Positions 1-64,000 of a DNA stretch of 64,000 nt are shown in pieces. The DNA is taken from positions 142,166,001 through 142,230,000 of the forward strand of contig OZ038378.1 in assembly GCA_964036045.1 (NCBI GenBank), read 5' to 3'. The DNA is from Eutreptiella sp. 'Long Island Sound 2002' (taxonomy: Eukaryota > Protista > Euglenida). The position numbers and the translations under genes were made by a program. Every line of letters starts with the position of its first letter. Positions within the stretch are counted from its first letter, which is position 1. The notes below the pieces were generated by a model, which did not search any database, was not told the DNA's origin, and saw only the letters and a list, made by a program, of their open reading frames with translations.

Positions 1-1181
1 GCCGAACCGCAAGATCTGCTCAATCACCTTTGGCACACCCAAACAAAGGGGGACAGAATCAGAAGCCAAAACCTCCGCTAGAGGTCACTATGATGCCCCT
101 AGGGGCCCCTAGTATCTCAAAGTATGGGTCTCTAGTACGGCCGGACGCCCAAATAGTTGCACTGCGCGCGCACTGCGCGCGCACTGCGCTTAAGGCTCCC
201 CCCTAGGGGCACCCCACCGGACGAATCATCCACATTCCTGAGGCGAACCCTGCAAAACAAGGCACAAAGCAAAGAACGGTAGAGAATGCCAACAAGACCG
301 GAGCAGATGGCTGAGCACTTGCAGAACGTGCTTTTGCAGTAAACAGTACATTACGTGAAGATGATGTAACCCACTTGATGGCGTCGGGACATGCCACTGT
401 GCAACTGATGCACAAGACGCCTTCCTTGTGGAGAAGGGCTAAAATGCCGTGGATTTTTGGAAATGCCAAACAAATACAGAAGCAGCATCCCTCCCTGTGT
501 GCACCTCAAGATATTTGAAACGAGCAAAACTTGAGCATGAAATTATGGGCAAAATTGTGCACCCACTGAGTAGTGGTTGAAAACAAGCTCTACGAGGCAA
601 TGCCACTCGGCTTTGTGCGCCGAATAATGCCTCTAAACAAAGTTTGAGCAAGCAATCTGAACGTTGGGACTGACTGGGCAGACAACAAAGGCTGCAAAAA
701 ATGAGCATATAATGCAGGAACGGATGTGTTGAATGCAGGGTTCTCAGGAGTTGATCACTATGGCTGGCAGACACTGCAGCACAGGCACGTGGGTGGCACA
801 ATGCACTGCAGAAGAAATGCGCAAAAAAAAACTGTGAAAAAACCTCCCTGTAAACAAAATCTGAGCAAGGAATCTGGAACTGGGGACTGACTGGGCAGAC
901 TGCCAAAGCTCCAGAAAGTGAGCATACAATGCAGGAACGGATGTGTTGGGATGCAAATGTCCCAGGAGTTGATGACTATGGCTGTTAGACACTGCAGCAA
1001 TGTACAGGAAGGTGGGTGGCACTTTGCAGTGCAGAAGAAATGAGCAGAAAAAACCTGGCTGGATCACTCTGCGTCTGAAAAGAGGTCCCCACTCAGCAAC
1101 CACGACACACTGCTTGTGTGGACAGGCAAACAGTGGGGATCACTGTCATTCTTCTTCCATGTACTGACCACACACAATCTG

Positions 1182-30478: not shown

Positions 30479-30970
30479 TCAATCAACAATAGGAGATGTT
30501 CTCTGTCGCTTTGCTTTTCTTTCGACGTCAGAATAGCGAAGGCTTTGGTCCAACCAATCTGGCATTTTTGCTTCCGTGTTCCGCTCAAGAGCCTTCTTCA
30601 GATCCTCCCAAGAAAATTTTGTTTCGTCATCTTCTGCCTCGGGATCGATCGGCCGCCGGAGGTGGTCCTGCATCTCAGGGCAGACGGTGCAATCCCACAG
30701 CGTCCTGACCCTTTGTGCCCAATTCTCTGCCGCATGGCCCATGTGCATGAGCCGTGTGTGGCCTATATTCGGGAGCTGCAGGCCGTCGCGCTCCCGGAGC
30801 CGCTGACACCGTCTGCGGCATGCCCAGAGCACCTGCAAGGCCTCCTTGCCGCCCTCGGTCACCAGGCCATGCCCTTTCATCCACCGCAGGAGAATGTGGA
30901 AGTGGTCTTCCTCTTCGAGGTTCACAAAGGCAAACCGCCGCCGCAAAGCAGCGTCCAATTCAGTGCGGCC
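30479..30970 (-). CDS. AAA domain 2, terminal exon
   Basis: CAG|GGC acceptor. Contains ELDAALRRRFAFVNL, IGHTRLM and TLWDCTVCPEMQDHL. Stop TGA at 30481-30479. Confidence 0.85.
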   Translation of the reverse strand, partial: GRTELDAALRRRFAFVNLEEEDHFHILLRWMKGHGLVTEGGKEALQVLWACRRRCQRLRERDGLQLPNIGHTRLMHMGHAAENWAQRVRTLWDCTVCPEMQDHLRRPIDPEAEDDETKFSWEDLKKALERNTEAKMPDWLDQSLRYSDVERKAKRQRTSPIVD

Positions 30971-31507: not shown

Positions 31508-31723
31508 CTGCTGATTGATGATGAGGATAATGTGTAGCCCTTTATCAAGACTAAACTCGTGGGTGCGGCCTGGCAAATATATGGCCTGGTCCCGATACTC
31601 CATCAAAAAGAACAACTCGCCGAGGACGCTGGGGATCCGGCCCTGGTCCCGCTGCTCAACGTACAGCACCAACACGTGCTCCTTCCCCTTGTTCCGCGCG
31701 GAGAACTCCAGCAGAGGTCCATC
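31508..31723 (-). CDS. AAA domain 2, exon with degenerate Walker B and NxxD
   Basis: CAG|GAT acceptor. Encodes DGPLLEF...VLVLYVEQRDQGRIPSVLGELFFLMEYR...LHIILIINQQ. Donor CAG|GTGCTG. 72 codons. Confidence 0.85.
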
Positions 31724-33547: not shown

Positions 33548-34189
33548 CTTCATCTCAAACGCACCGCTCGCCGTCGGGCGGTAGCCACACACAAACTCTT
33601 CGTAGCTGAGGTTTGCGTGCAGCCGCACGAACAGGAGCCGCTCGTCCGACGCCGCGCCGTCCGCCTCAGCAGACTCAGGGCGAGAGGGCATGGCCGCCTC
33701 TGGTCCCGGCGAAGGCCTCACAAAGCGGTTGAGATGGGGAGCGGCCTCGTCCTCCTTCGGGGGAGGCCTCTCCCCCCGGATGCCTTCGTCAGCCTCGTCC
33801 TGCGTGTCTGCCTCGTCGTTCGGGGCGCGTCCCTCGCTGCGGTCGGGGCCAAGGAGCAGCCGGGCCAAGTCCTGGGCGATGAACTTCTTGCCGCTGTTGG
33901 GGGGCCCGATGATGGCCAGTTGCTTCTTCCGTTTCAGTAGCCACAGGTCTTCCATAAAATTCCCTTGCGGCGCAGTGCGCGGTGCTGCCAGTCTGAGGTC
34001 ACTGTCGGTGGGGGTGTCAAAGGGCACCTTTTCTTTGGTCTGGCCGGCGTTGTCAAGGATGTCGACGTGACGACCTTCGAATTCGCCCTTCATTTGGCCC
34101 CAGAGAGTCTTGAACCGGAACTCCTTTGCCCGCTCCGCATCGCGGAAGAGGTCCTCGACATATGGCACGACTTGACTGTCCCACAGAAT
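33548..34189 (-). CDS. End of AAA domain 1 and start of degenerate McrB-like AAA domain 2
   Basis: T-rich tract then GAG|ATT acceptor. Contains ILWDSQVVPYVEDLF, then KKQLAIIGPPNSGKK and VRLHANLSYEEFVCGYRP. Donor AAG|GTCCCG. 214 codons. Confidence 0.88.
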
Positions 34190-34722: not shown

Positions 34723-35268
34723 CTGTAGCTCCGCCCAGCCCTCTTCGAAGCACTTCACCCCAAGCACGTGACTTGGGCCAATGTACCCCGCGGTGCCCTT
34801 CAACTTGTCGTTGGCCATCTCCAACAAGCGGTCAGCCACTTCCCCTAGCGACACCGCACGGGCCTTGAGCTCGTCCGGGAGCCGCAGGCTGTCCTGCCGA
34901 AACTTGCGCCGGACGACATGTCGCAGCGGCGAGTCCGGCAGCCGCGGATCCATCGCCACGAATGCAAAGCTCTGTCGTAGCTCCGCGCCGATGCGCACGA
35001 GGGACCGATCGAATGTGTTCATCGTGCCCAGAATCACCAGGTTTTCCGGAAGCTGACTGACGATGTCACCCGAATACTGCAGCTGCACGCGCAGCCGTCG
35101 AGGGTTCGAGGGACCTGGTTCTTGTGTGGCATGGCGGCGGTACAGGAGGTCCACAAGGTCACCCATGACCTTCGATAGAAGGCAGCGGTTGACTTCGTCG
35201 ATCACCAGCACCACCGTGCCCGACGCGTGACGCTTCGCTGCTTTCACGGCCTCCAGGAATGGCCCGTC
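34723..35268 (-). CDS. McrB-like AAA+ domain 1, exon with Walker B and NxxD
   Basis: AAG|GAC acceptor. Contains DGPFLEA, VLVIDEVNR, LPENLVILGTMNTFDRS, LRQSFAFV and YIGPSHVL. Donor CAG|GTGCGT. 182 codons. Confidence 0.88.
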
Positions 35269-36686: not shown

Positions 36687-36687
<1 letters not shown>

Positions 36688-38694: not shown

Positions 38695-38734
38695 TATGTG
38701 CGTGTGTTTGTGTGTGCGTGTGTGTGTGCGTGTG

Positions 38735-38771
<37 letters not shown>

Positions 38772-38971
38772 CAAAGGTGCTGTTACCAGAAGGCAATGGC
38801 CGGGATTGCTTACGGGCATAGCAAAACGGGAGGGCTGTGTGTGTTGCGTGCTTACTGTGCGTTGTGTGTGTCCGCTGGTCCTCGCTGCCCTGCCATTTTG
38901 TGGCGGTTGTGTGTGTGGGGGGGGGGGGTATTGCCATTTTTACCAGGTCTCCTGGATTAGCCCGTATGGCC

Positions 38972-39013
<42 letters not shown>

Positions 39014-39018
39014 CGTGG

Positions 39019-39049
<31 letters not shown>

Positions 39050-39051
<2 letters not shown>

Positions 39052-39515: not shown

Positions 39516-39549
<34 letters not shown>

Positions 39550-42396: not shown

Positions 42397-42755
42397 CTGC
42401 AGCTTGTAAGAAGCGCCGCCGCCGCCGCCGCCTCCACCGCTACTGAGGTCACTGTCCGAGACATTCGCGCCATTAGGGGCCACCGGGCGGTATCCACAAA
42501 CGAAGTCTTCGTAGCTGTACGCCGGATGGAACTGCACAAGGAACACACGGCCGCGGGCGCCCGCCAAGTGCCGCGCGTACTGCTGCACGGTCCATGACTT
42601 GCCGGTGCCCGGGGGGCCACAAAAGATAACGTTGCGCATGCTCTTCAACAAGAGGCTCCACTGCTCGAGTACGTTGGCATCTACCAGCGTCGCGCTATGC
42701 ACCCTCGAGATCTCCGGAGCGATTGCGTGTTGGGGTCCAAATATGAAATCCAGGC
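42397..42755 (-). CDS. McrB-like AAA+ domain 1, N-terminal exon (Walker A)
   Basis: RNVIFCGPPGTGKS and VQFHPAYSYEDFVCGYRP are McrB signatures. Phase-1 acceptor TCGTCAG|GC at 42756; an alternative phase-0 acceptor exists at 42856. Donor CAG|GCATTG (GC) is inferred from alignment with domain 2. Confidence 0.8.
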
Positions 42756-43831: not shown

Positions 43832-43897
43832 CTTTCCTGTTCCGCGTCAGCAGCCCTGTGATCTGGTTGTGCACAGAGTCACTGTCGCCTGGATTGC
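43832..43897 (-). CDS. Putative LRR C-cap/linker exon (66 nt)
   Basis: CACAG|GC acceptor and G|GTACAC donor, phase 1-1. Continues the last LRR as ...LDVR-GNPGDSDSVHNQITGLLTRNRK, which resembles the usual GN...I..LL.RN cap of RI-like LRR arrays. Confidence 0.6.
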
Positions 43898-45700
43898 CTG
43901 TGCACACCATGATGTGGTGTAGCAAAAATGGCCCAAAAACCATCAGAATAACAGGATACGAAAAAAACAAATCATTGGAAAAATTTCGGATTTCAAGAAG
44001 GCAACGAATAACGAGCCGCTATCCTAATCGTTCACATCATGCCGACCACTCCACCCTGGCTTGGAACAACGATTTAGGTATGATTGCTGTCAGTAGAGAT
44101 GATTCGTCAGTGGACCGGAATCCGAATGGTGACGACTCGGCCGAAGCGACCGAGTATGGTACCGGTGAAGAACACAACAGGAATGTATCGAACACATCAT
44201 CCTGGTCAGAAAACTCATTCAGCCCCACCAAAAAGATTACTGGCTAAGAAGTCAAACGATACCAGAGACCAACACCTGGATTGGATGAGAAAGACCTAAA
44301 CGATTGAATATTGTTTGCCACGTTGCGAGGCCACAACTATCCAGAGTGTCTACCACTCAATGTTAGAGTGGCGCCTCAAGGTATCTCAAGCATGGTGTTG
44401 TCACGAGACAATCAGAGAGATGTATAAAAGACGAGGCACCATTGAGGGATGTTGCCGACAGGTGAGGACGCTCGTTCAAAAATGAGCTCATAACGCAAGA
44501 GGGTGTGTAGCGAAGTTTGCATTGCGGTACTAGAGTTCGACCACGGGGAACTGATGGGCCGGCCAATCATGTCTCAGAGAAATGAATCGACATGGTTTTG
44601 TGAAGAACAAGGATTATTGGGTGGAGTATGCATTGTGCCTGGCATCGATCAACTGATCTTCCAGTGGCAAGAATTTACTGACCATACAGACATCCAGAAC
44701 AATCAGCTCCAAGAGCTTGAGTTTTGGAGGCCATTGCACATTTCAAATGTCCAATCCTCGGCAAGGCAATTGCTATACAAGGGCTGGCAGATTCCTAGGC
44801 TTGTCGGTTTTGAGGAGGTATGTCGGACAACTACTACTGGAGACATTAGAAATGGATGTCGAGCACACCAGGAAATCAATTGCTTTACGAATGGCCCAGG
44901 GATTCTCAGACCCACAAGGGAAGGGGGGGGGGGGTATGGGAGCCCCCTAGCTGGACGCCCCACATAAACAGGCTCCCGTGACGGGACCCAGGGGATTAGA
45001 ATGGGGGGGGGGGGTTAGTTATGGTGTGAGTACACCTAGGTCAAACCTAACCCTAATTGAGAGAGGATATTGGGCCTGAGATGGTGGGGGAGGGAACATC
45101 GGGTACACTACTAAACGGGGCCAAATAAGTACGCATGTGGAGGGAAACAAAGAATGATTCAGGCCATTGCCCGACTATACCCCCTCTGAAACCCTTCCAC
45201 ACTCGCTTTGCTCGCTCGAGAGGCAGCCGCGAATGGGTGTCTGTCTGATGGCCCACCTCCTCTGCGCTGGTGACCGGCGATGGTGCGTGAGCCTTTCAGT
45301 CGCTTGCGATATATGCGGTAACGCCCCATGTCCCACAATGTTCGCAGGCAGACCTGTACCTTGTGGTGCCCGTCAGTGGGTATCCCGTGATGAGGCTGCG
45401 TTATAGCGGTCGTGACTCCCCAACCGCCCTCCTGGTACTTCACCCCAAATCCCTCAAAGCACCACAGGGAACGCAGGAATGCAAAAGCCCTTACTTTTCA
45501 CCCACCCGAGTGCCCTCTTCAGGGGACCCTCTCGGCACCGGGATGGATTGAACTGTGGTCAGGAACAATCTTACACTTGACTTTGCCAGAAGAATGCGGC
45601 GAGATGGGCGTTAATGCAGGTGCGGGTGCAGGACGGGGCGCGGGGGAGGGGTCCTGGAATGAACCCGCGCCTTGTGTCTGCGTACAAGGACATCACATAC

Positions 45701-45784
45701 CCCTAACATCGAGGGTTTGCAACGTAGAGTTCTTCTCCAGGGCCTTGCCCAGCGCAGCCCCTCCTTCGCTTCCGATTTTGTTGT
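45701..45784 (-). CDS. LRR exon (28 aa), type A, last full repeat
   Basis: CAG|84 nt|GTATGT. Encodes xNKIGSEGGAALGKALEKNSTLQTLDVR. Confidence 0.85.
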
Positions 45785-48633
45785 CTGCATGTGTGCGTGT
45801 GGCTGTGCACACGCAGGTCCCCACAAACGCGCCCCGCTGCACTCCACCAACACACGACCAACGGTGTCACCACCGGTCAGCCCATTCCACGCAATGCTCA
45901 GCGTTTCGCCCACTCAACACAACACCATTCCTTATGTTGTGGGGCATGCCACAAAACAGTGTACGCCCACAACGCCCTTTACACACCCTTCACACGCCCG
46001 TTGGACAGCTCCATCCAACAACCCAACACCGCGGCTTGTGAGGGAGCGGCCGGCATGTGCATGGCTACGGGGAGGGGGGGGGGGGGGGGGCTGCGTAGCA
46101 GAGGGACGGTCCGTTCCAGCCCCCTCCCCAGTGCTCGACCAATGCCAGAAACAACGAGACGGTAGAAATGGATGTCGAGCACATCAGGAAATCGATTGCT
46201 TTGTGAATGTCCCAGGCAATGGCCGTGTGCTCCTGGTGCTACTTCGCACTGTGTCGCCAGCGCAAGGGCAGAGGCTGTACTCCCCATCGGCCCACACTAC
46301 GCATGGAACCCGAGGGCACACACCACGGCCACGGCCATGTGCCAAGGGGCCTGCCCATCCCCCATTCCCTCATCACACCCCTCCACAATCCAGTCCTCGT
46401 CCGCCGCCGCCAACGCCGCGGGGACTCCACAGCTGGTCCCAGTGCTACGCTGTGCCCGTCCCACAAAACCATGAATCGCAAAACGGGGGGATGAAGGATG
46501 AAGGGGGTCAGGCTGCAGTGCCTCACAAACAAAAGCGGACAAAAGCACATCCAGCTCAACGGTGCTATGGAGGGCTCGAGAAGATGCACAACCGCAGCAC
46601 AACACAAACCCACTGGTGTGTGAAATGCATATAACACGTCTTCGCTCTACGCGGCGGACGCCTCAACGCCTCCTAAATCCACCGCACTCCTCTGCTGTGG
46701 CAACCGTCACCGTACACTGTGTCGCCTGCACCTGCCAGAACCACTGCACATGTGTTTGCCGATCGAATCACTGCAAGGGCTTGTTCCGTCTGTCCACACT
46801 GACCACGGCACAGCGTACAATTCCTTTGCAGAGTAGCGAAGGCGCACGCATGTGCGCATGTCGGAAGCACCAGGCCTTTGCTAATTCCTTGGTGAACCAT
46901 CGAGGCTGCCTACCAGCCAAGTTCAGCCCTCGGAGACCACCCGCACACCAGGACATAAAATTCGATTCACCCACTGGCCGCCATGTGGCGCATTCTCGAT
47001 CGATGACCAGTTCTACCCCCAGGCGCTCCACTACTGCTAGACCCTTCACATACCTCCGCCCCCATGCGTGTGGTGTGCAGGGGCACCACCAGTCCCCAGG
47101 CCCGCAGGAGTAAATGTTGAGTTCTTGCATTTGGCCCATGCCATTTCACAAAAGCATTGACTTGTGGTTTACAATGCGGTTTTTCGGTTTGAAAAATCGA
47201 CATGCAAAAACGACATGCCCATACCCCATCAAGTGAAGCCCCATTCTGTGGCATAGGTTTTGGTGTTGTCAAAATATACACGCACAGTACCCCCACGGCC
47301 CATGCCCCAATATCCCCACACCCCCAAATCGTTCGTAATACCTAAGCAATCCCTGGCACCTCCGAGTAGCAGAAAGGGTATCTGAAGGGGGGTATCTGAC
47401 AGCGTACCCATTGGTACGCTCCTGGTGTGGGTGAGGGGCTTTGCATGCTTTTTGGGCAGGCACTGCACAGGGCGTCGGAGTGACAGAAGCAGTCGGCGTT
47501 AGTTTAATGGTTCACGTGTTTGATGGGGTGCTGGTTGGTGTGCCTGTGGAAGTGTGCGTTGGGATGGCTGTAGAACTCTCTGTGGATGTGCCGGTTGGTG
47601 GGTCTGTTGAGGATCCGGTTGAGAGGACTTTCAGGATATTCGTCGGGCTGGTTGTTTGGGTCGGAAAAGCAGTGTTCGTTGAAGTGGCAGTCGCACTTCG
47701 AGCCTGGGGATACCCACTGACACGCACCACAACGTACAGGTCTGCCTGCGAGTCTTGTGAGACATGGGGCCAGACCGCATGTGTCGCAAGCGACTGAAAG
47801 GCTCACGCACCATCGCCCGTCACCAGCGCAGAGGAGGTGGGCCATCAGACAGATACGACTGTCGTACACCAGAAGTAACAAACAGCACATCCCCGTCATT
47901 CTGATGGCCGACCCCGTCACACGCCATTCCCATTGCAAGGACAGCAGTACACAGCATTGCCCCACTCGCGTGTCTCATGCAACCAACACGTTGTGTGTGA
48001 GAGGAAACCCCTACACTTGGCAATTCCCAATCTCAGTCCATTATGCCACCACATCTCATGGCCTCCCCAGGGCAGTGTAACGGCATCCTCCATTAGCCCC
48101 AAAGTACTATTTCCCGGGCCCCTTGGCGCGCTTAGCACGCACAACGACACACGCTGCTCGTGGCGGGGTCCCCATATCGCGGGCGCCGAAGGCCACACCG
48201 GTCCTGTTCCTGGCACCATGTCGCCCCTCCCCCCTCTGACCTGCAGCGCACTGCAAACACCAGCCCCTGGGGACTGCAAAGCGGTACGGCAGCCTGACTG
48301 CAGGAGAGGCTTCGGGGGGGGGGGGGTAAGTGGGGGAGGGGGGAGGGTTGTGGGGGTTCCACTTTCAGGTTGTGATGCGCCTGTGAACAGTTGAGTGACC
48401 TGCACTGTAAGTTTAGTGGGATGCCTTGTAGTACACCTGGTGTCCATTGCAGGTGCGGGTGCAGGACGGGGCGCGGGGGAGGGGTCCTGGAATCAACCTT
48501 TGACGCTTTTGTTCCGGGGCTAAGCTGCTTATGTTGCCACAGGCATTGTTCTGCACCCCGTCAACTGCACTGCGCCAACCAGAACACAGGAACGAACCCG
48601 CGCCTTGTGTCTGCGTACGAGCACATCACATAC

Positions 48634-48717
48634 CGTAAACATCGAGGGTTTGCAACGTAGAGTTCGTCTCCAGGGCCTTGACCAGCGCAGCCCCTCCTTT
48701 ATTTCCGATGGCGTTCA
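48634..48717 (-). CDS. LRR exon (28 aa), type B
   Basis: CAG|84 nt|GTATGT. Encodes xNAIGNKGGAALVKALETNSTLQTLDVY. Confidence 0.85.
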
Positions 48718-50429
48718 CTGCATGTGTGCGTGTGGCTGTGCACACGCAGGTCCCCACAAACGCGCCCCGCTGCACTCCACCAACACACGACCAACGGCGT
48801 CACCACCGGTCAGCCCATTCCACGCAATGCTCAGCGTTTCGCCCACTCAACACAACACCATTCCTTATGTTGTGGGGCATGCCACAGAACAGTGTACGCC
48901 CACAACGCCCTTTACACACCCTTCACACACCCGTCGGACAGCTCCATCCAACAACCCAACACCGCGGCTTGTGAGGGAGCGGCCGGCATGTGCATGGCTA
49001 CGGGGCGCGGGGGGGCTGTGCGGCAGAGGGACGGTCCGTTCCAGCCCCATCCCCAGTGCTCGACCAATGCCAGAAACAACGACCGGGCGGCAGTGCAGTC
49101 GCAGGAGGTGTTCGAGCCGCATTCTGCACCAGCACAGCACACACGCAAACGCAATGACAGGGCAACGCCACAACACAGTGATTGGGTCACAAGTTCAGAG
49201 GGAGGGAGACTGTTAGGCAGTCAGAGGCTGCTTGCGCTAACCGTTGATGGCTGAGACGCAAACAACCACCGGGCGGCAGATTCCCGTGCTTCTCAGTTTT
49301 GAGGAGGAATGTCGGACAACAATACAAATGGAGACGGTAAAAATGGATGTCGAGCACATCAGGAAATCGATTGCTTGTCCCAGGCAATGGCCGTGTGGTC
49401 CTGGTGCTACTTCGCACTGTGTCGCCAGCGCAAGGGCAGAGGCTGTACTCCCCATCAGCCCACACTACGCATGGAACCCGAGGGCACACACCACGGCCAC
49501 GGCCATGTGCCAAGGGGCCTGCCCATCCCCCATTCCCTCATCACACCCCTCCACACTCCAGTCCTCGTCCGCCGCCGCCAACGCCGCGGGGACTCCACAG
49601 CTGGTCCCAGTGCTACGCCGTGCCCGTCCCACAAAACCATGAATCGAAAAACGGGGGGATGAAGGATGAAGGGGGTCAGGCTGCAGTGCCTCACAAACAA
49701 AAGCGGACAAAAGCACATCCAGCTCAACGGTGCTATGGACGGCTCGAGAAGATGCACAACCGCAGCACAACACAAACCCACTGGTGTGTGAAATGCATAT
49801 AACACGTCTTCGCTCTACACGGCGGACGCCTCAACGCCTCCTAAATCCACCGCACTCCTCTGCTGTGGCAACCGTCACCGTACACTGTGTCGCCTGCACC
49901 TGCCAGAACCACTGCACATGTGTTTGCCGATCGAATCACTGCAAGGCCTTGTTCCGTCTGTCCACACTGACCACAGCACAGCGTACAATTCCTTTGCAGA
50001 GTAGCGAAGGCGCACGCATGTGCGCATGTCGGAAGCACCAGGCCTTTGCTAATTCCTTGGTGAACCATCGAGGCTGCCTACCAGCCAAGTTCAGCCCTCG
50101 GAGACCACCCGCACACCAGGACATAAAATTCGATTCACCCACTGGCCGCCATGTGGCGCATTCTCGATCGATGACCAGTTCTACCCCCCAGGCGCTCCAC
50201 TACTGCTAGACCCTTCACATACCTCCGCCGAGATGGGCGTTAATGCAGGTGCGGGTGCAGGACGGGGCGCGGGGGAGGGGTCCTGGAATGAACCCTTGAC
50301 GCTTTTGTTCCGGGGCTAAGCTGCTTATGTTGCCACAGGCATTGTTCTGCACCCCGTCAACTGCACTGCGCCAACCAGAACACAGGAACGAACCCGCGCC
50401 TTGTGTCTGCGTACGAGCACATCACATAC

Positions 50430-50513
50430 CGCTAACATCGAGGGTTTGCAACGTAGAGTTCTTCTCCAGGGCCTTGCCCAGCGCAGCCCCTCCTTCGCTT
50501 CCGATTTTGTTGT
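50430..50513 (-). CDS. LRR exon (28 aa), type A
   Basis: CAG|84 nt|GTATGT. Encodes xNKIGSEGGAALGKALEKNSTLQTLDVS, also visible in ORF 50422..50715. Confidence 0.85.
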
Positions 50514-52219
50514 CTGCATGTGTGCGTGTGGCTGTGCACACGCAGGTCCCCACAAACGCGCCCCGCTGCACTCCACCAACACACGACCAACGGCGTCTCC
50601 ACCGGTCAGCCCATTCCACGCAATGCTCAGCGTTTCGCCCACTCAACACAACACCATTCCTTATGTTGTGGGGCATGCCACAAAACAGTGTACGCCCACA
50701 ACGCCCTTTACACACCCTTCACACGCCCGTTGGACAGCTCCATCCAACAACCCAACACCGCGGCTTGTGAGGGAGCGGCCAGCATGTGCATGGCTACGGG
50801 GGGCGGGGGGGGGCTGTGCAGCAGAGGGACGGTCCGTTCCAGCCCCCTCCCCAGTGCTCGACCAATGCCAGATACAACGACCGGGCGGCAGTGCAGTCGC
50901 AGGAGGTGTTCGAGCCGCATTCTGCACCAGCACAGCACACACGCAAACGCGATGACAGGGCAACACCACCACACAGTGATTGCGTCACGAGTTCAGAGGG
51001 AGGGAGACTGTTAGGCAGTCAGAGGCTGCTTGCGCTAACCGTTGATGGCTGAGACACAAACAACCACCGGGTTGCAGATTCCCGTGCTTCTCAGTTTTGA
51101 GGAGGAATGTCGGACAACAATACGAATGGAGACGGTAGAAATGGCTGTCGAGCACATCAGGAAATCGATTGCTTTATGAATGTCATAGGCAATGGCCTTG
51201 TGGTCCTGGTGCTACTTCGCACTGTGTCGCCAGCGCAAGGGCAGAGGCGGTACTCCCCAACAGCCCACACTACGCATGGAACCGGAGGCCACACACGACG
51301 GCCACGGCCATGTGCCAAGGGGCCTGCCCATCCCCCATTCCCTCATCACACCCCTCCACACTCCAGTCCTCGTCCGCCACCGCCAACGCCACGGGGACTC
51401 CACAGCTGGTCCCAGTGCTACGCCGTGCACGTCCCACAAAACCATGAATCGGAAAACGGGGGGGTGAAGGATGAAGGGGGTCAGGCTGCAGTGCCTCACA
51501 AACAAAAGCGGACAAAAGCACATCCAGCTCAACGGTGCTATGGACGGCTCGAGAAGATGCACAACCGCAGCACAACACAAACCCACTGGTGTGTGAAATG
51601 CATATAACACGTCTTCGCTCTACACGGCGGACGCCTCAACGCTTCCTAAATCCACCGCACTCCTCTGCTGTGGCAACCGTCACCGTACACTGTGTCGCCT
51701 GCACCTGCCAGAACCACTGCACATGTGTTTGCCAATGGAATCACTGCAAGGCCTTGTTCCGTCTGTCCACATTGACCACACCACAGCGTACAATTCCTTT
51801 GCAGAGTAGCGAAGGCGCACGCATGTGCGCATGTCGGAAGCACCAGGCCTTTGCTAATTCCTTGGTGAACCATCGAGGCTGCCTACCAGCCAAGTTCAGC
51901 CCTCGGAGACCACCCGCACACCAGGACATAAAATTCGATTCACCCAGTGGCCGCCATGTGGCGCATTCTCGATCGATGACCAGTTCTACCCCCAGGCGCT
52001 CCACTATTGCTAGACCCTTCACATACCTCCACCCCCATGCGTGTGGTGTGCGGGGACACCACCAGTCCCCAAGCCCGCAGGAGTAAATGTTGAGTTTTTG
52101 CATTTGGCCCATGCCATTTCACAAAAGCATTGACTTGTGGTTTACAATGCGGTTTTTTGGTTTAAAAAATCGCCTACAAAAACGACATGCCCATACCCCA
52201 TCAAGTGCATCCCCATTCT

Positions 52220-54138
52220 TGCATTGGCAGCAACCATGCAAGCCTTCAAAACAAGGTTCCGATGGACAGGGGCCCAAATTTTGGCAGTGGGGATCTTCTT
52301 TTTCTTACGCAAAAACTTTTCATATAGCTCATGCTTCAAACTTTCATTAATACTAGCATCCTGCCTAGTACTAGTCACGGGGGCATATCTTTTGGCCACC
52401 CGGAGATCCCGTTCCCCTGCCTCATCAGAATATAGCAAGGGGGTCCGCGGGTTAAACCAAGTGTGGGACCACGCATGCATATATAGCGTTGCAGTGCAAC
52501 CTTCTTCCACAACTTCCGGAATGATGTGCACAATATATGTGTACACCAAACCCATAGCTTGCCATGCTGCAGTTGCCAATGTAGTGCAACCGTAGCACAG
52601 GTGTACTATGTGGCAAAAGGCCAGAACCAAAGAATGGAAGGGCAATGGGACCATGGGACCATGCCCCCCGCCAGTCTGCCAATCACAATGCGGGCCTCTC
52701 GGCCACTTAAGCTGATGCCTGCTTGGAACCTTCCTCACACGAGGCGCTAGTGCTCCCTGCTATCAGAAGGCAAAGATCCAGGGTGGTATCTCCTAGCAAC
52801 TTGAGCTATTACCTCCAACAACTCATGCTTGTACGGCCCGGGCACGGTCCGGCCAATAACACCAAGGAGTCTGGAGGCTCCTCCTTTGGTGTTGTGTAAT
52901 ACTGGTTGTATAATATAAACCTTTGCCAGGTTGGATGCACCCTGGAACTTGTGGGAACCACGCACCTCATTTAGACGCCCCCCCTTGTGCAGAAACAGTG
53001 CGGCAACCCCATGCTTATTGACCCGGGGACATGCCACGCACCCCTTTTGCCGACACTCTGACCACAGATGGTGGTGATCTGCAGTCAGGCAACCAAACTA
53101 TAGGTGCAGTGTCGTAGTGTACTCTGCACCACCATACTTCATGCGTTGGTTGAATTTACACAAAGGCAGGGCTTGTAGGGCCTCTGCCCGTTTGGGTAGC
53201 CACTCCCCATCAACAACTTTGGGAAGTTCCATCCAGGTTATCATGTCTGTGCACCTGGCCAGACCTTGGGAACCAGTCTCCCGCAAAATCAATTATACAA
53301 AAACTTAGGGTTTACATTGGGACGCCCCCTGGGCTGGTATCCATCAGCATACAGGCCCAAGGTTAGGGTGGCTTGTTGGGGGGGAGGGTCCCTGTGCCCT
53401 TGTACTGCTAGGGTGCCGGACTTCTGCAGAAGTAGATGGCACAGTTCTAGCGACAGTCTGTTGTTGCTCAGGGAGTACTCCACTACCGGAAGATGTAGTA
53501 GCTCCTGCTGCCGCAATGCCACCAGAGACCACCCGGCACCTGGTTGGAGGCGATCAAGGGTTTGCAGCACTGCTACTGGCACAACATGCTCATGCCGCAG
53601 AAGCATGGCAGCTGGTGCCTGGGGACACTAGGGTACTGGGCTGGCGGGGTTGGGTGGTAAAGGGCCCATTGGGCGCCCCACAACCCGGACTTTACCAGTG
53701 GGGGGCCTTGGCAGGTTGTCTGGCTCCTTGCAGTCCAAAGAAGTGGCCCTAGGGAAGTTCAAGATGAAAGCTGACACCATGAACTAGTTGGCAGGCACAG
53801 TGCATCTGCTGGCAGAAGCCTCCAGTTTGGACACGTCCCCATTGACCCATACAGTAAAATTGTCCACAATGAATTCATGGTGGAACATTGTGCTTTTGCA
53901 AGAGGGTGATAGAGAGCATGAATGGCAGAAATTTTTGTAGTGCCCCGACCTGTAGCTTTCACCGGAACCTTTTTTTGCTCGATTTGGTCACAGTAGCTCA
54001 TAGAACCAGGCCCTCCAAGTGTGCTCGACTATCCGCCCCCAAAAAAGAGATCTCTGTTTCACATTTGTTTCCACCAGCATTTCTATAATGCCCCAACCTG
54101 TAGCTTTCACCAGAACCTGTTTTTGGTCGATTAGGTCT
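52220..54138 (-). mobile_element. Degenerate insertion with coding remnants, possibly a CACTA/CMC-type transposase fragment; copy 1
   Basis: Interrupts CCCCATTCT|GTGGCATAGG, which is uninterrupted at ~47247, ~56484 and ~59598. Broken long ORF includes LTLGLYADGYQP. Family assignment is weak. Confidence 0.4.
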
Positions 54139-54695
54139 GTGGCATAGGTTTTGGTGTTGTCCAAATATACACGCACAGTGCCCCCACGGCCCATGCCCCA
54201 ATATCCCCACACCCCTAAATCGTTCGCAATGCCTAAGCAATCCCTAGCACCTCCAAGTAGCAGAAAGGGAACCTGAAGGGCAGGCATTGCACAGGGCATC
54301 GGAGTGGCAGAAGCAGTGGGCGTTAGTTTGATGGGTCACGTGTTTGATGTGGTGCTGGTTGGTGTGCCTGGGGTGCTGGTTGGTGTGCCTGTGGAAGTGG
54401 GCGGGAGGGTTGTGGGGGTTCCACTTTCAGGTTGTGATGTGCCTGTGAACAGTTGAGTGACCTGCACTGTAAGTTTAGTGGGATGCCTTGTAGTACACCT
54501 GGTGTCCATTGCAGGTGCGGGTGCAGGACGCTGCGCAGGGGAGGGGTCTTGGAATGAACCTTTGACGCTTTTGTTCCGGGGCTAAGCTGCTTATGTTGCC
54601 ACAGGCATTGTTCTGCACCCCGTCAACTGCACTGCGCCAACCAGAACACAGGAACGAACCCGCGCCTTGTGTCTGCGTACGAGCACATCACATAC

Positions 54696-54779
54696 TGCAA
54701 ACATTGAGGGTCTGCAACGCAGAGTTCGTCTCCAGGGCCTTGCCCAGTGCAGCCCCTCCTTCATCTCCGATGGCGTTCG
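54696..54779 (-). CDS. LRR exon (28 aa), type B
   Basis: CAG|84 nt|GTATGT, phase 1-1. Encodes xNAIGDEGGAALGKALETNSALQTLNVC. Confidence 0.85.
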
Positions 54780-57700
54780 CTGCATGTGTGCGTGTGGCTG
54801 TGCACACGCAGGTCCCCACAAACGCGCCCCGCTGCATTCCACCAACACACGACCAACGGTGTCACCACCGGTCAGCCCATTCCACGCAATGCTCAGCGTT
54901 TCGCCCACCCAACACAACACCATTCCTTATGTTGTGGGGCATGCCACAAAACAGTGTACGCCCACAACGCCCTTTACACACCCTTTCACACACCCGTCGG
55001 ACAGCTCCATCCAACAACCCAACACCGCGGCTTGTGAGGGAGCGGCCAGCATGTGCATGGCTACGGGGCGTGGGGGGGCTGTGCGGCAGAGGGACGGTCC
55101 GTTCCAGCCCCCTCCCCAGTGCTCGACCAATGCCAGAAACAACGACCGGGCGGCAGTGCAGTCGCAGGAGGTGTTCGAGCCGCATTCTGCACCAGCACCG
55201 CACACACGCAAACACGATGACAGGGCAACGCCACAACACAGTGATTGGGTCACAAGTTCAAAGGGAGGGAGACTGTTAGGCAGTCAGAGGCTGCTTGCGC
55301 TAACCGTTGATGGCTGAGACACAAACAACCACCGGGCGGCAGATTCCCGTGCTTCTCAGTTTTGAGGAGGAATGTCGGACAACAATACGAATGAAGACGA
55401 TGGAAATGGATGTCGAGCACAACAGGAAATCGATTGTTTTATGAATGTCCCAGGCAATGGCCGTGTGGTCCTGGTGCTACTTCGCACTGTGTCGCCAGCG
55501 CAAGGGCAGAGGCGGTACTCCCCATCAGCCCACACTACGCATGGAACCGGAGGCCACACACGACGGCCACGGCCATGTGCCAAGGGGCCTGCCCATCCCC
55601 CATTCCCTCATCACACCCCTCCACACTCCAGTCCTCGTCCGCCGCCGCCAACGCCGCGGGGACTCCACAGCTGGTCCCAGTGCTACGCCGTGCACGTCCC
55701 ACAAAACCATGCATCGAAAAACGGGGGGATGAAGGATGAAGGGGGTCCGGCTGCAGTGCCTCACAAACAAAAGCGGACAAAAGCACATCCAGCTCAACGG
55801 TGCTATGGAGGGCTCGAGAAGATGCACAACCGCAGCACCACACAAACCCACTGGTGTGTGAAATGCATATAACACGTCTTTGCTCTACACGGCGGACGCC
55901 TCAACGCTTCCTAAATCCACCGCACTCCTCTGCTGTGGCAACCGTCACCGTACACTGTGTCGCCTGCACCTGCCAGAACCACTGCACATGTGTTTGCCAA
56001 TGGAATCACTGCAAGGCCTTGTTCCGTCTGTCCACACTGACCACAGCACAGCGTACAATTCCTTTGCAGAGTAGCGAAGGCGCACGCATGTGCGCATGTC
56101 GGAAGCACCAGGCCTTTGCTAATTCCTTGGTGAACCATCGAGGCTGCCTACCAGCCAAGTTCAGCCCTCGGAGACCACCCGCACACCAGGACATAAAATT
56201 CGATTCACCCACTGGCCGCCATGTGGCGCATTCTCGATCGATGACCAGTTCTACCCCCAGGCGCTCCACTACTGCTAGACCCTTCACATACCTCCGCCCC
56301 CATGCGTGTGGTGTGCAGGGGCACCACCAGTCCCCAGGCCCGCAGGAGTGAATGTTGAGTTTTTGCATTTGGCCCATGCCATTTCACAAAAGCATTGACT
56401 TGTGGTTTACAATGCGGTTTTTCGGTTTAAAAAATCGCCTACAAAAACGACATGCCCATACCCCATCAAGTGCAGCCCCATTCTGTGGCATAGGTTTTGG
56501 TGTTGTCAAAATATACACGCACAGTACCCCCACGGCCCATGCCCCAATATCCCCACACCCCCAAATCGTTTGCAATGCCTAAGCAATCCCTGGCATCTCC
56601 GAGTAGCAGAAAGGGTATCTGAAGGGGGTAGCTTACGGCGTACCCATTGGTACGCTCGTGATGTGGGTGAGGGGCTCTGCATGCTTTTTGGGCAGGCATT
56701 GCACAGGGCATCGGAGTGGCAGAAGCAGTGGGCGGTAGTTTGATGGTTCACGTGTTTGATGGGGTGCTGGTTGGTGGCCGCACAGCCCCCCCACGCCCCG
56801 TAGCCATGCACATGCCGGCCGCTCCCTCACAAGCCGCGGTGTTGGGTTGTTGGATGGAGCTGTCCGACGGGTGTGTGAAGGGCGTGTAAAGGACGTTGTG
56901 GGCGTACACTGTTTTGTGGCATGCCCCACAACATAAGGAATGGTGTTGTGTGAATGAAAACGGTGGAAATGGATGTCGAGCACATCAGGAAATCGATTGT
57001 TTAATGAATCCCAGGCAATGGCCGTGTGCTCCTGGTGCTACTTCGCACTGTGTCGCCTGTACCTGCCTGATCAACTGCACATATGTTTGCCGTCGGAATC
57101 ACTGCACGCTCTTGTTCAGTCCATTCACACTGACCACAGCACAGCGTACCATTCCTCGGCAGAGCAGGGAAACCATCGGGGCTGCCTACCAGCCAAGTTC
57201 AGCAGTTGTAGACCACCCACCCACCAGTACACGGAATTCCATTCACTCACTGGCCCCCATGTGGGTTGCAATCTCGCCCAGGCGCTCCACTACTGCTAGG
57301 TCCGTCACGTATCTCCGCCCCCTTTTGCACTTTGCCACAATACCCAAAAATATGCCACAGAATGGGGCTGCGCTGGATGGGGTTTCGGCATATTAGGTCT
57401 TGCGCAAGATTTCAAACCGGAAAACCGCATTGTAAACCACAAGTCAATGCTTTTGTGCAATGGGAAGGGGGCGTGCACAATGCACATCACAACGTCCCCT
57501 CCCACAATCCGCACGCAGCATCTCCGCCACAGCGTCCCCCCTCGGAAGCGCCCCTTTCCCCTTCCCAAACGCTTGCGCACACCGAACGCCCACAGCCAGC
57601 GCAAGGGCAGAGGCTGTACTCCCCATCGGCCCACACTACGCATGGAACCCGAGGCCCTGCCACGGCCATGTGCCAAGGGGCCTGCCCATCCCCCATTCCC

Positions 57701-60199
57701 TCATCACACCCCTCCACACTCCAGTCCTCGTCCGCCGCCGCCAACGCCGCGGGGACTCCACAGCTGGTCCCAGTGCTACGCCGTGCACGTCCCACAAAAC
57801 CATGCATCGAAAAAACGGGGGGATGAAGGATGAAGGGGGTCCGGCTGCAGTGCCTCACAAACAAAAGCGGACAAAAGCACATCCAGCTCAACGGTGCTAT
57901 GGAGGGCTCGAGAAGATGCACAACCGCAGCACCACACAAACCCACTGGTGTGTGAAATGCATATAACACGTCTTCGCTCTCAGACCTCCTAAGTCTCCGG
58001 CACCGAAGTCACCGGCCTTGTAAAAAACTGTAAAAAACCTGTAAAAAAAAACCTGTAAAAAAGCTGTAAAAAAAACTTGTAAACAACTGCACAAGGGGTT
58101 GTGGGATGCATCCCGTCATTGCCTGATCGTTGCTAAATGGTTTGTGATATTTCCTCCCAGCTTTTGTCAACTTTTTTCGGCCTTTCAATGGTTTGGTACA
58201 CCCAGTACCCCCCCCCCCCCTTGTATAAGCTACGCAAAACTCCCAAATTAATACGGTCCCTACGCCTACTGTAGCTTGGACAAGGCCGTAGACCCGCAGG
58301 TTCAAAAAGAGCAGATTGCGTGGCGAGCTGGTGCAACAAAGGGGAATATAATGCACAAATATCCCCAAAATCAGAGCTATGTGGGTTCAGATGGGCAAAC
58401 AATCACAAAAAATGTGTCCATGAATCTATGTAGCTGGCAAATTTGTCACCAAACCCATGTCTCATGTGGCCGCAGTACATTTGTAGCGGATCAAATTAGG
58501 TACCAAATTAATACAGCCCCGACACTCGCTGTAGCTTGGACGGGCGTAGCTTATACAGAGGAGGGGGGGGGGTACATAACAAACCACACATCAGCACAGC
58601 AGTACGATGCACAAACACAGCTCCTGCATGCCCCTTGTTGTTTCATTTTTCTTATTGTAAATTGCCAGTCACCGCAGTCACCGAGTGTAAAAAAAACTCC
58701 CCAACCAGCAATCACCGAGGGTCACCGAAATCCCCGCTACTTAGGAGCCCTGCCGTCGCCGTCCGCCGCCGCCAACGCCGCGGGGATTCCACAGCTGGTC
58801 CCAGTGCTACGCCGTGCACGTCCCACAAAACCATGAATCGAAAAACGGGGGGATGAAGGATGAAGGGGGGTCAGGCTGCAGTGCCTCACAAACAAAAGCG
58901 GACAAAAGCACATCCAGCTCAGCGGTGCTATGGACGGCTCGAGAAGATGCACAACCGCAGCACAACACAAACCCACTGGTGTGTGAAATGCATATAACAC
59001 GTCTTCGCTCTACACGGCGGACGCCTCAACGCTTCCTAAATCCACCGCACTCCTCTGCTGTGGCAACCGTCACCGTACACTGTGTCGCCTGCACCTGCCA
59101 GAACCACTGCACATGTGATTGCCGATCGAATCGCTGCAAGGCCCTGTTCCGTCTGTCCACATTGACCACACCACAGCGTACAATTCCTTTGCAGAGTAGC
59201 GAAGGCGCACGCATGTGCGCATGTCGGAAGCACCAGGCCTTTGCTAATTCCTTGGTGAACCATCGAGGCTGCCTACCAGCCAAGTTCAGCCCTCGGAGAC
59301 CACCCGCACACCAGGACATAAAATTCGATTCACCCAGTGGCCGCCATGTGGCGCATTCTCGATCGATGACCAGTTCTACCCCCCAGGCGCTCCACTACTG
59401 CTAGACACTTCACATACCTCCACCCCCATGCGTGTGGTGTGCAGGGGCACCACCAGTCCCCAGGCCCGCAGGAGTAAATGTTGAGTTTTTGCATTTGGCC
59501 CATGCCATTTCACAAAAGCATTGACTTGTGGTTTTTCGGTTTAAAAAATCGCTTACAAAAACGACATGCCCATACCCCATCAAGTGCAGCCCCATTCTGT
59601 GGCATAGGTTTTGGTGTTGTCAAAATATACACACAGTACCCCCACGGCCCATGCCCCAATATCCCCACACCCCCAAATCGTTTGCAATGCCTAAGCAATC
59701 CCTGGCATCTCCGAGTAGCAGAAAGGGTATCTGAAGGGGGTAGCTGACGGCGTACCCATTGGTACGCTCGTGATGTGGGTGAGGGGCTCTGCATGCTTTT
59801 TGAGCAGGCATTGCACAGGGCATCGGAATGGCAGAAGCAGTGGGCGTTAGTTTGATGGTTCACGTGTTTGATGGGGTGCTGGTTGCTGTGCCTGTGGAAG
59901 TGTGCGGCAGGGTTTCTAGGGGTTCCACTTTCAGGTTGTGATGCGCCTGTGGACAGTTGAGTGACCTGCACTGTAAGTTTAGTGGGATGCCTTCTAGTAC
60001 ACCTGGTGTCCATTGCAGGTGTGGGTGCAGGACGGGGCGCGGGGGAGGGGTCCTGGAATGAACCTTTGATGCTTTTGTTCCAGGGCTAAGCTGCTTATGT
60101 TGCCACAGGCATTGTTCTGCACCCCGTCAACTGCACTGCGCCAACCAGAACACAGGAACGAACCCGCGCCTTGTGTCTGCGTACGAGCACATCACATAC

Positions 60200-60283
60200 C
60201 GCTAACATCGAGGGTTTGCAACGTAGAGTTCGTCTCCAGGGCCTTGCCCAGCGCATCCCCTCCTTCCTTTCCGATTTTATTGT
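60200..60283 (-). CDS. LRR exon (28 aa, RI/NLRC3-like), type A
   Basis: CAG|84 nt|GTATGT, phase 1-1. Encodes xNKIGKEGGDALGKALETNSTLQTLDVS. Confidence 0.85.
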
Positions 60284-61777
60284 CTGCATGTGTGCGTGTG
60301 GCTGTGCACACGCAGGTCCCCACAAACGCGCCCCGCTGCACTCCACCAACACACGACCAACGGCGTCACCACCGGTCAGCCCATTCCACGCAATGCTCAG
60401 CGTTTCGCCCACCCAACACAACACCATTCCTTATGTTGTGGGGCATGCCACAAAACAGTGTACGCCCACAACGCCCTTTACACACCCTTCACACACCCGT
60501 CGCTCCATCCAACAACCCAACACCGCGGCTTGTGAGGGAGCGGCCGGCATGTGCATGGCTACGGGGGCCGGGGGGGGCTGTGCGGCAGAGGGACGGTCCG
60601 TTCCAGCCCCCTCCCCAGTGCTCGACCAATGCCAGAAACAACGACCGGGCGGCAGTGCAGTCGCAGGAGGTGTTCGAGCCGCATTCTGCACCAGCACAGC
60701 ACACACGCAAACGTGATGACAGGGCAACGCCACAACACAGTGATTGGGTCACGAGTTCAGAGGGAGAGAGACTGTTAGGCAGTCAGAGGCTGCTTGCGTT
60801 AACCGTTGATGGCTGAGACGCAAACAACCACCGGGCGGCAGATTCCCGTGCTTCTCAGTTTTGAGGAGGAATGTCGGACAGCAATACGAATGGAGACGGT
60901 AGAAATGGATGTCGAGCACAACGGGAAATCGATTGTTTTATGAATGTCCCAGGCTATGACCGTGTGGTCCTGCTGCTACGCCGTGCACGTCCCACAAAAC
61001 CATGCATCGAAAAGCGGGGGGGTGAAGGATGAAGGGGGTCAGGCTGCAGTGCCTCACAAACAAAAGCGGACAAAAGCACATCCAGCTCAACGGTGCTATG
61101 GAGGGCTCGAGAAGATGCACAACCGTAGCACAACACAAACCCACTGGTGTGCGAAATGCATATAACACGTCTTCGCTCTACACGGCGGACGCCTCAACGC
61201 TTCCTAAATCCACCGCACTCCTCTGCTGTGGCAACCGTCACCGTACACTGTGTCGCCTGCACCTGCCAGAACCACTGCACATGTGTTTGCCGATCGAATC
61301 ACTGCAAGGCCTTGTTCCGTCTGTCCACACCGACCACACCACAGCGTACAATTCCTTTGCAGAGTAGCGAAGGCGCACGCATGTGCGCATGTCGGAAGCA
61401 CCAGGCCTTTGCTAATTCCTTGGTGAACCATCGAGGCTGCCTACCAGCCAAGTTCAGCCCTCGGAGACCACCCGCACACCAGGACATAAAATTCCATTCA
61501 CCCACTGGCCGCCATGTGGCGCATTCTCGATCGATGACCAGTTCTACCCCCCAGGCGCTCCACTACTGCTAGACCCTTCACATACCTCCACCCCCATGCG
61601 TGTGGTGTGCAAGGGCACCACCAGTCCCCAGGCCCGCAGGAGTAAATGTTGAGTTTTTGCATTTGGCCCATGCCATTTCACAAAAGCATTGACTTGTGGT
61701 TTAATGCGGGTTTTTCGGTTTAAAAAATCGCCTACAAAAACGACATGCCCATACCCCATCAAGTGCATCCCCATTCT

Positions 61778-63522
61778 TGCATTGGCAGCAACCATGCAAG
61801 CCTTCAAAACAAGGTTCCGATGGACAGGGGCCCAAATTTTGGCAGTGGGGATCTTCTTTTTCTTACGCAAAAACTTTTCATATAGCTCATGCTTCAAACT
61901 TTCATTAATACTAGCATCCTGCCTAGTACTAGTCATGGGGGCATTTCTTTTGGCCACCCGGAGATCCCGTTCCCCTGCCTCACCATAATATAGCATGGGG
62001 GTCCGCAGGTTAAACCAAGTGTGGGACCACCCATGCATATATAGGGTTGCAGCGCAACCTTCATCCGCAACTTCCGGAATGATGTGCACAATATATGTGT
62101 ACACCAAACCCATAGCTTGCCATGCTGCAGTTGCCAATGTAGTGCAACCGTAGCACAGGTGTACTATGTGGCAGAAGGCCAGAACCAAAGAATGGAAGGG
62201 CAATGGGAGGACCATGCCCCCCGCCAGTCTGCCAATCACAGTGCGGGCCTCTCGGCCACTTAAGCTGATGCCTGCTTGGAACCTTCCTCGCATGAAGCGC
62301 TAGTGCTCCCTGCTATCAGAAGGCAAAGATCCAGGGTGGTATCTCCTAGCAACTTGAGCTATTACCTCCAACAACTCATGCTTGTACGGCCCGGGTACGG
62401 TCCGGCCAATAACACCAAATAGTCTGGAGGCTCCTCCTTTGGTGTTGTGTAATACTGGTTGTATAATATAAACCTTTGCCAGGTTGGATACACCCTGGAA
62501 CTTGTGGGAACCACGCACCTCATTTAGACGCCCCCCCTTGTGCAGAAACAGTGCGGCAACCCCATGCTTATTGACCCGGGGACATGCCACGCACCCCTTT
62601 TGCCGACACTCTGACCACAGATGGTGGTGATCTGCAGTCAGGCAACCAAACTATAGGTGCAGTGTCGTAGTGTACTCTGCACCACCATACTTCATGCGTT
62701 GGTTGAATTTACATGAAGGCAGGGCTTGTAGGGCCTCTGCCCGTTTGGTTAGCCACTCCCCATCAACAACTTTGGGAAGTTCCATCCAGGTTATCATGTC
62801 TGTGCACCAGTCTCCCGCAAAATCAATTATACAAAAACTTAGGGTTTACATTGGGATGCCCCCTGGGCTGGTATCCATCAGCATACAGGCCCAAGGTTAG
62901 GGTGGCTTGTTGGGGGGGAGGGTCCCTGTGCCCTTGTACTGTTAGGGTGCCGGACTTCTGCAGAAGTAGATGGCACAGTTCTAGCAACAATTTGTTGTTG
63001 CTCAGGGAGTACTCCACTACCGGAAGATGTAGTAGCTCCTGCTGCCGCAATGCCACCAGAGACCACCCGGCACCTGGTTGGAGGCGATCAAGGGTTTGCA
63101 GCACTGCTGCTGGCAGAACATGCTCATTCCGCAGAAGCATGGCAGCTGGTGCCTGGGGACTATGGGATACTGGGCTGGCGGGGTTGGGTGGTAAAGGGCC
63201 CATTGGACGCCGCACGACCTGGACTGTGCCAATGTGGGGCCTTGGCAGGTTGTCTGGCTCCTTGCAGTCCAAAGAAGTGGCCCTAGGAAAGTTCAAGATG
63301 AAAGCTGACACCATGAACTAGTTGGCAGGCAAAGGGCAGATGCCGGCAAACCCCTTGTTTGGACACGTCCCCATTGACCCATACAGTAAAATTGTCCACA
63401 ATGAATTCATGGTGGAACATTGTGCTTTTGCAAGAGGGTGATAGAGAGCATGAATGGCAGACATTTTTGTAACGCCCCAACCTGTAGCTTTCGCTGGAAC
63501 CTTTTTTTGGTCGATTTGGTCT
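61778..63522 (-). mobile_element. Second copy of the same insertion at the homologous site
   Basis: Same junctions and near-identical ORF remnants as 52220-54138. Confidence 0.45.
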
Positions 63523-64000
63523 GTGGCATAGGTTTTGGTGTTGTCAAAATATACACGCAAAGTGGCCCCACGGCCCATGCCCCAATATCTGCACACCCCC
63601 AAATCGTTCCCAATGCCTAAGCAATCCCTGGCACCTCCGAGTAGCAGAAAGGGAACCTGAAGGGCAGGCATTGCACAGGGCATCGGAATGGCAAAAGCAG
63701 TGGGCGTTAGTTTGATGGTTCACGTGTTTGATGGGGTGCTGGTTGCTGTGCCTGTGGAAGTGGGCGGGAGGGTTGTGGGGGTTCCACTTTCAGGTTGTGA
63801 TGTGCCTGTGAACAGTTGAGTGACCTGCACTGTAAGTTTAGTGGGATGCCTTGTAGTACACCCGGTGTCCATTGCAGGTGCGGGTGCAGGACGGGGGGCG
63901 GGGGAGGGGTCCTGGAATGAACCTTTGATGCTTTTGTTCCGGGGCTAAGCTGCTTATGTTGCCACAGGCATTGTTCTGCACCCCGTCAACTGCACTGCGC

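Follow-up and report, generated by a model that had tools for sequence, protein, structure and literature searches.

The window analysed here is a 64,000-nt stretch of the genome of the euglenid Eutreptiella sp. 'Long Island Sound 2002' (assembly GCA_964036045.1, contig OZ038378.1, positions 142,166,001 to 142,230,000). It holds the last five exons of an array of leucine-rich repeats (LRRs), and the exons that follow the array, in a predicted gene that we call LRR-McrB, in which the repeats lie upstream of two McrB-type AAA+ domains, and a gene for McrC, the nuclease partner of bacterial McrB, lies just beyond the window. Taken as sequence, an intron-split McrBC pair with a fast-varying LRR array points to an immune sensor of a kind that has not been described in eukaryotes before. 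Positions below are those of the window unless they are given on its contig (G000:C1).

The LRR-McrB gene

Five LRR exons lie in the window, all on the minus strand (60200..60283, 54696..54779, 50430..50513, 48634..48717 and 45701..45784). A first, sequence-only reading of the locus had described them as one repeat per symmetric exon, and that description is confirmed: each exon is 84 nt long, phase 1-1 and stop-free, with CAG before it and GTATGT after it. The residue pairs preceding the conserved Asn are S-A, C-N, S-V, Y-D and R-G, as had been read, and the sole difference between the exons starting at 50513 and 45784 is indeed AGC/AGG. These five are exons 15 to 19 of an array that extends past the window end, where exons 1 to 14 occupy G000:C1:142230059-142263441 (minus strand). 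Of the 19 one-LRR exons, 16 are near-identical (88% identical to each other) and three, all among exons 1 to 14, are of a second type (type B) that is about 50% identical to the main type. The exons match the LRR_6 profile, their 28-amino-acid repeats being of the ribonuclease inhibitor (RI)-like kind. All 19 are without stops and have intact splice sites, and they are predicted from these signals to be spliced.

The duplicated unit is an intron plus an exon. Such units occupy 45656..64000 (minus strand), with introns about 92-98% identical, partial intron fragments and one inverted intron fragment (56777-56951). Exon 17 is identical to upstream exon 7, and exon 19 to upstream exon 6. We rejected an assembly artefact as the source of this structure because a separate ENA assembly, which probably comes from the same sample, is essentially identical, matching 32287-72294 of the extended window (40 kb) nearly base for base; depth on the collapsed contig, a rough measure only, is roughly 8-15x that of unique sequence as against 12-16 copies.

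Downstream of the array comes a 66-nt LRR C-cap exon (43832..43897, minus strand, phase 1-1), whose start at 43897 completes the codon for the last G of the R-G pair. Through the phase-1 acceptor at 42755, the cap exon is predicted to splice in frame onto the first of five further minus-strand exons, ending at 30479, which encode the two McrB-type domains and match AAA_5 and McrB when the gene model is searched exon by exon. McrB-like GTPase domain 1 is divided between 42397..42755, where Walker A is intact, and 34723..35268, where Walker B and the MNxxDRS motif are intact and the trans arginine pair is lost (LRQSF). A linker and the start of domain 2 follow at 33548..34189, with a degenerate Walker A that ends in GKK, and the domain continues at 31508..31723 with Walker B and NxxD degenerate as well. 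The last exon (30479..30970) keeps the trans arginine pair (LRRRF) and carries the McrB lid, the stop codon and a basic C-terminus that may act like a nuclear localization signal. With a predicted first coding exon at G000:C1:142272018-142272102 (minus strand, beyond the window), the gene model comes to about 1330 codons, and it is single copy in three own-genome searches of limited sensitivity.

The motif losses in the two domains are complementary, domain 1 keeping the cis motifs without the trans arginines and domain 2 the opposite. In McrB, the cis motifs and the trans arginines of an active site are contributed by neighbouring subunits (PMC7680126), and an alternating ring would therefore be the natural arrangement to expect.

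The intron in domain 1 (35269-42396, minus strand, 7.1 kb), which is absent in the homolog described below, is either GC-AG or nonconventional. An alternative donor 6 nt earlier would place CAG at +4..6 and CTG at -8..-6, which is the pattern of a euglenid nonconventional intron (PMC4770533), and both readings keep the frame. A (CA)310 microsatellite (29577-30196) stands directly after the LRR-McrB stop codon. Four sequencing runs that we considered as RNA evidence were rejected, because introns are covered continuously in them and they are therefore DNA; none of the sequence words looked for occurred in three small runs of 2013 under the same species label.

Variation and recombination in the LRR array

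Diversity is 0.119 in the array exons versus 0.024 in the flanking introns (Fisher P 6e-12). The variable sites are x5, x7, x8 and x10 of LxxLxLxxNxL and the loop that follows, and the framework residues are nearly invariant. The variation sits as two blocks, one at each exon end, and the 3' block of one exon together with the 5' block of the next makes up a single strand plus loop. The array shows how recombination can shuffle half-sites when an intron lies inside a binding strand. Ten of the 28 codons, those spanning the junction, take 24 of the 31 minimum amino-acid-changing steps (P 3e-6, for a 10-codon window that was partly chosen post hoc and with five split-codon changes scored as non-synonymous).

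The sequence-only reading had held that most differences between the exons are non-synonymous and that the junction residue is the most variable. Both claims are borne out, the internal codons of the five window exons requiring a minimum of 14 non-synonymous changes as against 5 synonymous ones, and the 18 junctions among all 19 exons showing 11 different residues, the maximum of all sites. It had also placed the variable x-sites on the ligand-binding concave face, in keeping with their overlap with the positively selected sites 15/17/19/20 of Ectocarpus ROCO LRRs (PMC3341825). What it made of the split codon stands only in part. The split does add diversity, in that six of the 11 junction residues require a non-G last base, but it is no special invention, since the same intron position is found in an old paralogous array and junction residues have already been described in Tetrahymena.

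The ratio of non-synonymous to synonymous change (dN/dS) is 1.6 overall, but its excess over 1 does not reach significance, with P about 0.09 for the whole exon and 0.2 for the variable window. It is about 2.2 in the variable exon ends versus about 0.56 in the exon middle, which is the helix part. Expressed as proportions of sites that differ, non-synonymous variation (pN) is 0.116 and synonymous variation (pS) 0.073 overall, and pN is above the rate of the introns (bootstrap P 0.0005) but not significantly above pS (P 0.09).

Pairs of sites that fail the four-gamete test are found inside exons, across introns and among intron sites. Recombination throughout the array rules out tree-based site models, and the conflicts, together with the identical exon pairs 6/19 and 7/17 at distant positions, indicate unequal crossover and gene conversion, much as the sequence-only reading had proposed in pointing to duplication and unequal crossover. 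In linear exon order, all 18 adjacent strand-loop decapeptides are distinct. Adenine-directed mutagenesis of the kind known from diversity-generating retroelements was set aside: A is involved in 19 of 31 variable exon sites versus 15 of 39 intron sites, and no template was seen.

The old paralogous array (G000:C4:23939943-23961797, L011-L014) consists of 12 LRR exons, likewise 84 nt and phase 1, with unrelated introns at the same position as in the McrB-linked array. Its exons are only 62% identical mutually, yet x7 is Ser or Ala only, whereas six residues occur at x7 in the McrB-linked array despite 88% exon identity. This comparison implies that the intron position is ancestral and that the hypervariability is specific to the LRR-McrB gene. 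One exon of the older array is without an AG acceptor, and no McrB lies near it. Elsewhere, a small contig (G000:C514:1-10334) carries dozens of near-identical LRR_6 matches with a period of roughly 719 nt.

The neighbouring McrC gene

Searching the whole 2.28-Gb genome for the McrC family gave two matches, both of them exons of one gene. This gene (G000:C1:142277889-142287708, minus strand, beyond the window) ends 5.8 kb upstream of the predicted LRR-McrB start, on the same strand, and has four predicted exons with about 640 codons, in frame over three GT-AG introns and with the PD...DxK catalytic motif intact. Exons 3 and 4 match McrC profiles (PF10117 over the cut-off in two exons). The prediction of exons 1 and 2 uses only the reading frame and the splice sites; exon 2 had no profile match, and the C-terminal extension had no match in the Atlas. 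A single-sequence AlphaFold model of the nuclease exon reached a confidence (pLDDT) of 39 and was not used. By a simple length ratio, the single McrC and the single McrB that were found would come to lie no more than about 70 kb apart by chance with a probability of about 1e-4 or less. Intron 3 of the gene contains a tandem repeat of about 197 nt (L006, about 5360-7650).

Homologs and origin

A large protein search gave one close relative of LRR-McrB, 55% identical in that search and about 50% overall, on a 2.7-kb metagenomic contig (L023). It has the same tandem McrB domains and the same degenerate motifs, the trans arginine pair being lost in its domain 1 too, and it has four intron positions in common with the Eutreptiella gene inside the McrB part. 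Its upstream exon, the counterpart of the cap exon, is phase 1-1, keeps the LRR register and the same terminal residues, and joins McrB in phase 1. A third homolog is known as a fragment, and no relatives were found in JGI metagenome and viral contigs. The nearest named relatives are bacterial McrB proteins; some of the placeable matches sit in McrBC operons, and in a tree of the McrB matches the two eukaryotic-type domain-1 sequences cluster together. Bacterial contamination was rejected because introns are present, at positions shared with the homolog.

Tandem McrB proteins of prokaryotic type (P0049, P0050, P0051, P0053 and P0060) were also seen. Their first domain is without a canonical Walker B and the arginine pair is present in both domains, and we read them as a separate origin of tandem McrB.

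Other elements of the window and genome

Long GC-rich open reading frames (ORFs) lie at 5717-9056 (minus strand), and 5720-7282 matches polysaccharide lyase family 8 and lyase catalytic domains; this lyase-like ORF is possibly another bacteria-derived gene. A retroelement-like block at 12758-20345 contains an RNase H ORF (16303-17478, minus strand) flanked by duplicated segments of about 1 kb, one direct and one inverted. The element at 23244-29584, possibly Penelope-like, is bounded by a 517-nt direct repeat (99%) and has long minus-strand ORFs, one with a weak GIY-YIG match. Outside the window, copies of plastid rps11 on chromosomes C7, C8 and C15 (L019-L021) score identically to the plastid contig, and their sequence marks them as recent plastid-to-nucleus insertions. 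The plastid proteins rps4 and rpoA of the same assembly are identical to those of Eutreptiella sp. CCMP1594, which identifies the host as this marine euglenid or a very close strain.

Interpretation

We suggest that a bacterial McrBC module, of the type IV restriction class, moved into the euglenid nuclear genome, acquired spliceosomal introns and was rebuilt as a sensor, motor and nuclease. The DNA-binding domain of McrB would have given way to about 19 RI-like LRRs, each on a symmetric exon of its own. Unequal crossover and gene conversion among the near-identical units would keep altering the number of repeats and reshuffle the two variable blocks at the exon ends, and each 3' block would form, with the 5' block that follows, one ligand-facing strand and loop in which selection would favour amino-acid change. 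The two McrB domains probably assemble into a ring, in which domain 1 would bind the nucleotide and domain 2 would contribute the arginines that act in trans. The ligand of the LRRs would be a variable foreign molecule, most plausibly viral. Once bound, it would position or activate the ring together with the McrC nuclease encoded next to it, and foreign or own DNA would be cut. That a eukaryote has domesticated a bacterial McrBC module, in which a diversifying LRR sensor stands where the DNA-binding domain was, appears to us somewhat probable. That it amounts to a working immune system, an McrBC motor-nuclease with recombining and possibly combinatorially spliced LRR specificity in more than one protist lineage, is a bolder claim, which may be right but which we put forward tentatively.

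Several observations weigh against this proposal. McrC has Leu where the McrB-stimulating residue is expected (TgMcrC R263 / Ec K157, the position being aligned via an intermediate bacterial McrC), and with the stimulating arginine so replaced, canonical McrB-McrC coupling may be lost. Apart from the lack of significance in dN/dS, the exon synonymous sites too lie somewhat over the intron level (P 0.02). Hypervariable LRR arrays are present elsewhere in the genome, so having such an array does not by itself imply a link to what McrBC does. The LRR score of the cap exon in L023 is modest (P 0.0035), and the L023 contig is too short to reveal its LRR array or any McrC. Finally, the search for expression turned up neither an RNA run that contains the locus nor a protein derived from a transcript.

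McrC without its stimulating arginine would fit a reading in which LRR-McrB is a sensor or scaffold for variable ligands that works without nuclease activity, and McrC a leftover neighbour or a gene with a separate job. The order of the two genes, reversed relative to the bacterial operons examined here, fits with this, and McrB-clade domains have been repurposed in animals, for example in the Neuron Navigators (PMC9877351). However, McrC retains a long intact frame over three introns as well as its catalytic motif, and it remains adjacent in a 2.28-Gb genome; we regard a purely nuclease-independent role as unlikely.

We also doubt that the diversity arises mainly at the RNA level, through exon skipping of a Dscam- or NLRP3-like kind that would give many receptors per cell from one gene. 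All the exons are symmetric with identical splice sites, forward skipping could reach 74 distinct strand-loop decapeptides (as computed from the array) versus 18 in linear order, and skipping has been reported for ROCO and NLRP3. Yet all the mixing observed is in DNA, three of the 171 possible skips create a TAG stop, type-B to type-B joins being of the kind that gives a stop, and tandem duplication of one unit by itself explains the symmetry. Diversification by splicing is nonetheless compatible with a domesticated McrBC module as an add-on.

RI-like LRRs are classically nuclease inhibitors. With LRR-McrB and McrC tightly linked, the locus might be a selfish toxin-antidote or drive element, in which McrC is a toxin restrained by LRR-McrB and the variation stems from genetic conflict, not from pathogens; a restriction-modification pair of bacterial origin in a protist mitochondrion has been proposed to act in this way (PMC8099122). 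A fixed internal partner, however, would not favour a different surface in each repeat, and the gene is single copy with no sign of mobility, and we consider such an element improbable. Very unlikely, too, is a neutral or decaying, unexpressed locus made by recent duplications and patchy gene conversion, with a separate LRR gene ending after the cap exon: no expression was seen, a stop lies 20 codons into the intron following the cap exon and the dN/dS test is not significant, but stops are absent from all 19 exons, whose splice sites are intact and whose framework is nearly invariant, the variation is placed at ligand-facing sites, and the phase-1 link from cap to McrB and the motif pattern are kept in a homolog about 50% identical.

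Comparison with known systems

Arrays with one LRR per exon and junction codons are already known from brown algae, Tetrahymena and the NLRs. The brown algal ROCO proteins (LRR-ROC-COR; PMC3341825, PMC11378527) resemble LRR-McrB in that each symmetric exon encodes a single LRR and the repeats stand N-terminal to a GTPase, and their variable concave sites 15/17/19/20 correspond to x3, x5, x7 and x8. ROCO exons are 72-nt, phase-2 and type I, with the strand within one exon, whereas the 84-nt, phase-1, RI-like exons of Eutreptiella cut the strand. ROCO genes form a multigene family with intronic inactive exons, whereas LRR-McrB is single copy, and where ROCO has ROC-COR the Eutreptiella GTPase is a tandem McrB with an adjacent nuclease gene. 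We rejected membership of the ROCO family, as there are neither 72-nt phase-2 exons nor ROC-COR. The parallel with ROCO that the sequence-only reading drew, missing the downstream tandem McrB and the McrC gene beside it, is thus one of analogy only.

The Tetrahymena LRR genes, as presented in the portion of their description available to us (PMC6564038), likewise have tandem intron-plus-exon units, a junction amino acid made from two exons and a proposed origin by unequal crossover. Their exons are 90 nt and phase 2, they number thousands of genes, and that portion mentions no fusion to McrB. Vertebrate NOD/NLRC proteins (PMC6642158) share a 28-amino-acid RI-like LRR per exon, with a frame-preserving border inside the beta strand. 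They differ in having a NACHT ATPase of the STAND class and C-terminal LRRs, with repeats that are neither near-identical nor hypervariable. Membership of the NLRs was rejected because the Eutreptiella protein has an McrB-type AAA+ domain C-terminal to its LRRs and not an N-terminal STAND-class NTPase.

On the other side of the fusion, the McrBC type IV restriction systems (PMC7680126, PMC11090510) share an AAA+ GTPase with Walker A, Walker B and MNxxDRS (in domain 1) and an adjacent McrC with a PD-(D/E)xK nuclease. The Eutreptiella version differs in being nuclear and having introns, in the LRR array that replaces the modified-base-binding domain, in an McrC without the stimulating Arg and in the reversed gene order. 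Its two McrB domains show complementary loss, whereas the bacterial tandem McrBs seen in this analysis keep the arginine pair in both wherever readable. In Neuron Navigators/UNC-53 (PMC9877351), which are eukaryotic proteins too, the AAA+ domain belongs to the McrB clade and probably came from bacteria, but they have CH and coiled-coil regions, a single AAA domain and no LRR or McrC, and the Eutreptiella domains best match bacterial-type McrB. The type II restriction-modification system of katablepharid mitochondria (PMC8099122) is a further case of a protist that has retained restriction genes of bacterial origin as a set; it is organellar, pairs an HpaII-like nuclease with a methylase and has no variable sensor.

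A 2024 census of McrBC left eukaryotes out and stated that no McrC had been reported with the animal McrB homologs (PMC11090510). In the literature that we searched, with incomplete coverage, no LRR-McrB-McrB fusion next to a spliced McrC turned up, McrBC with a nuclease partner is described only from prokaryotes, and nothing was found on pathogen defence in euglenids. If our proposal is true, a spliced McrB-McrC pair with variable LRRs unites bacterial restriction and sensing in the style of NLRs and ROCO proteins in a two-gene locus. An NLR-like protein sensor would there be coupled directly to a restriction nuclease, and the euglenids would have a concrete candidate for pathogen defence.

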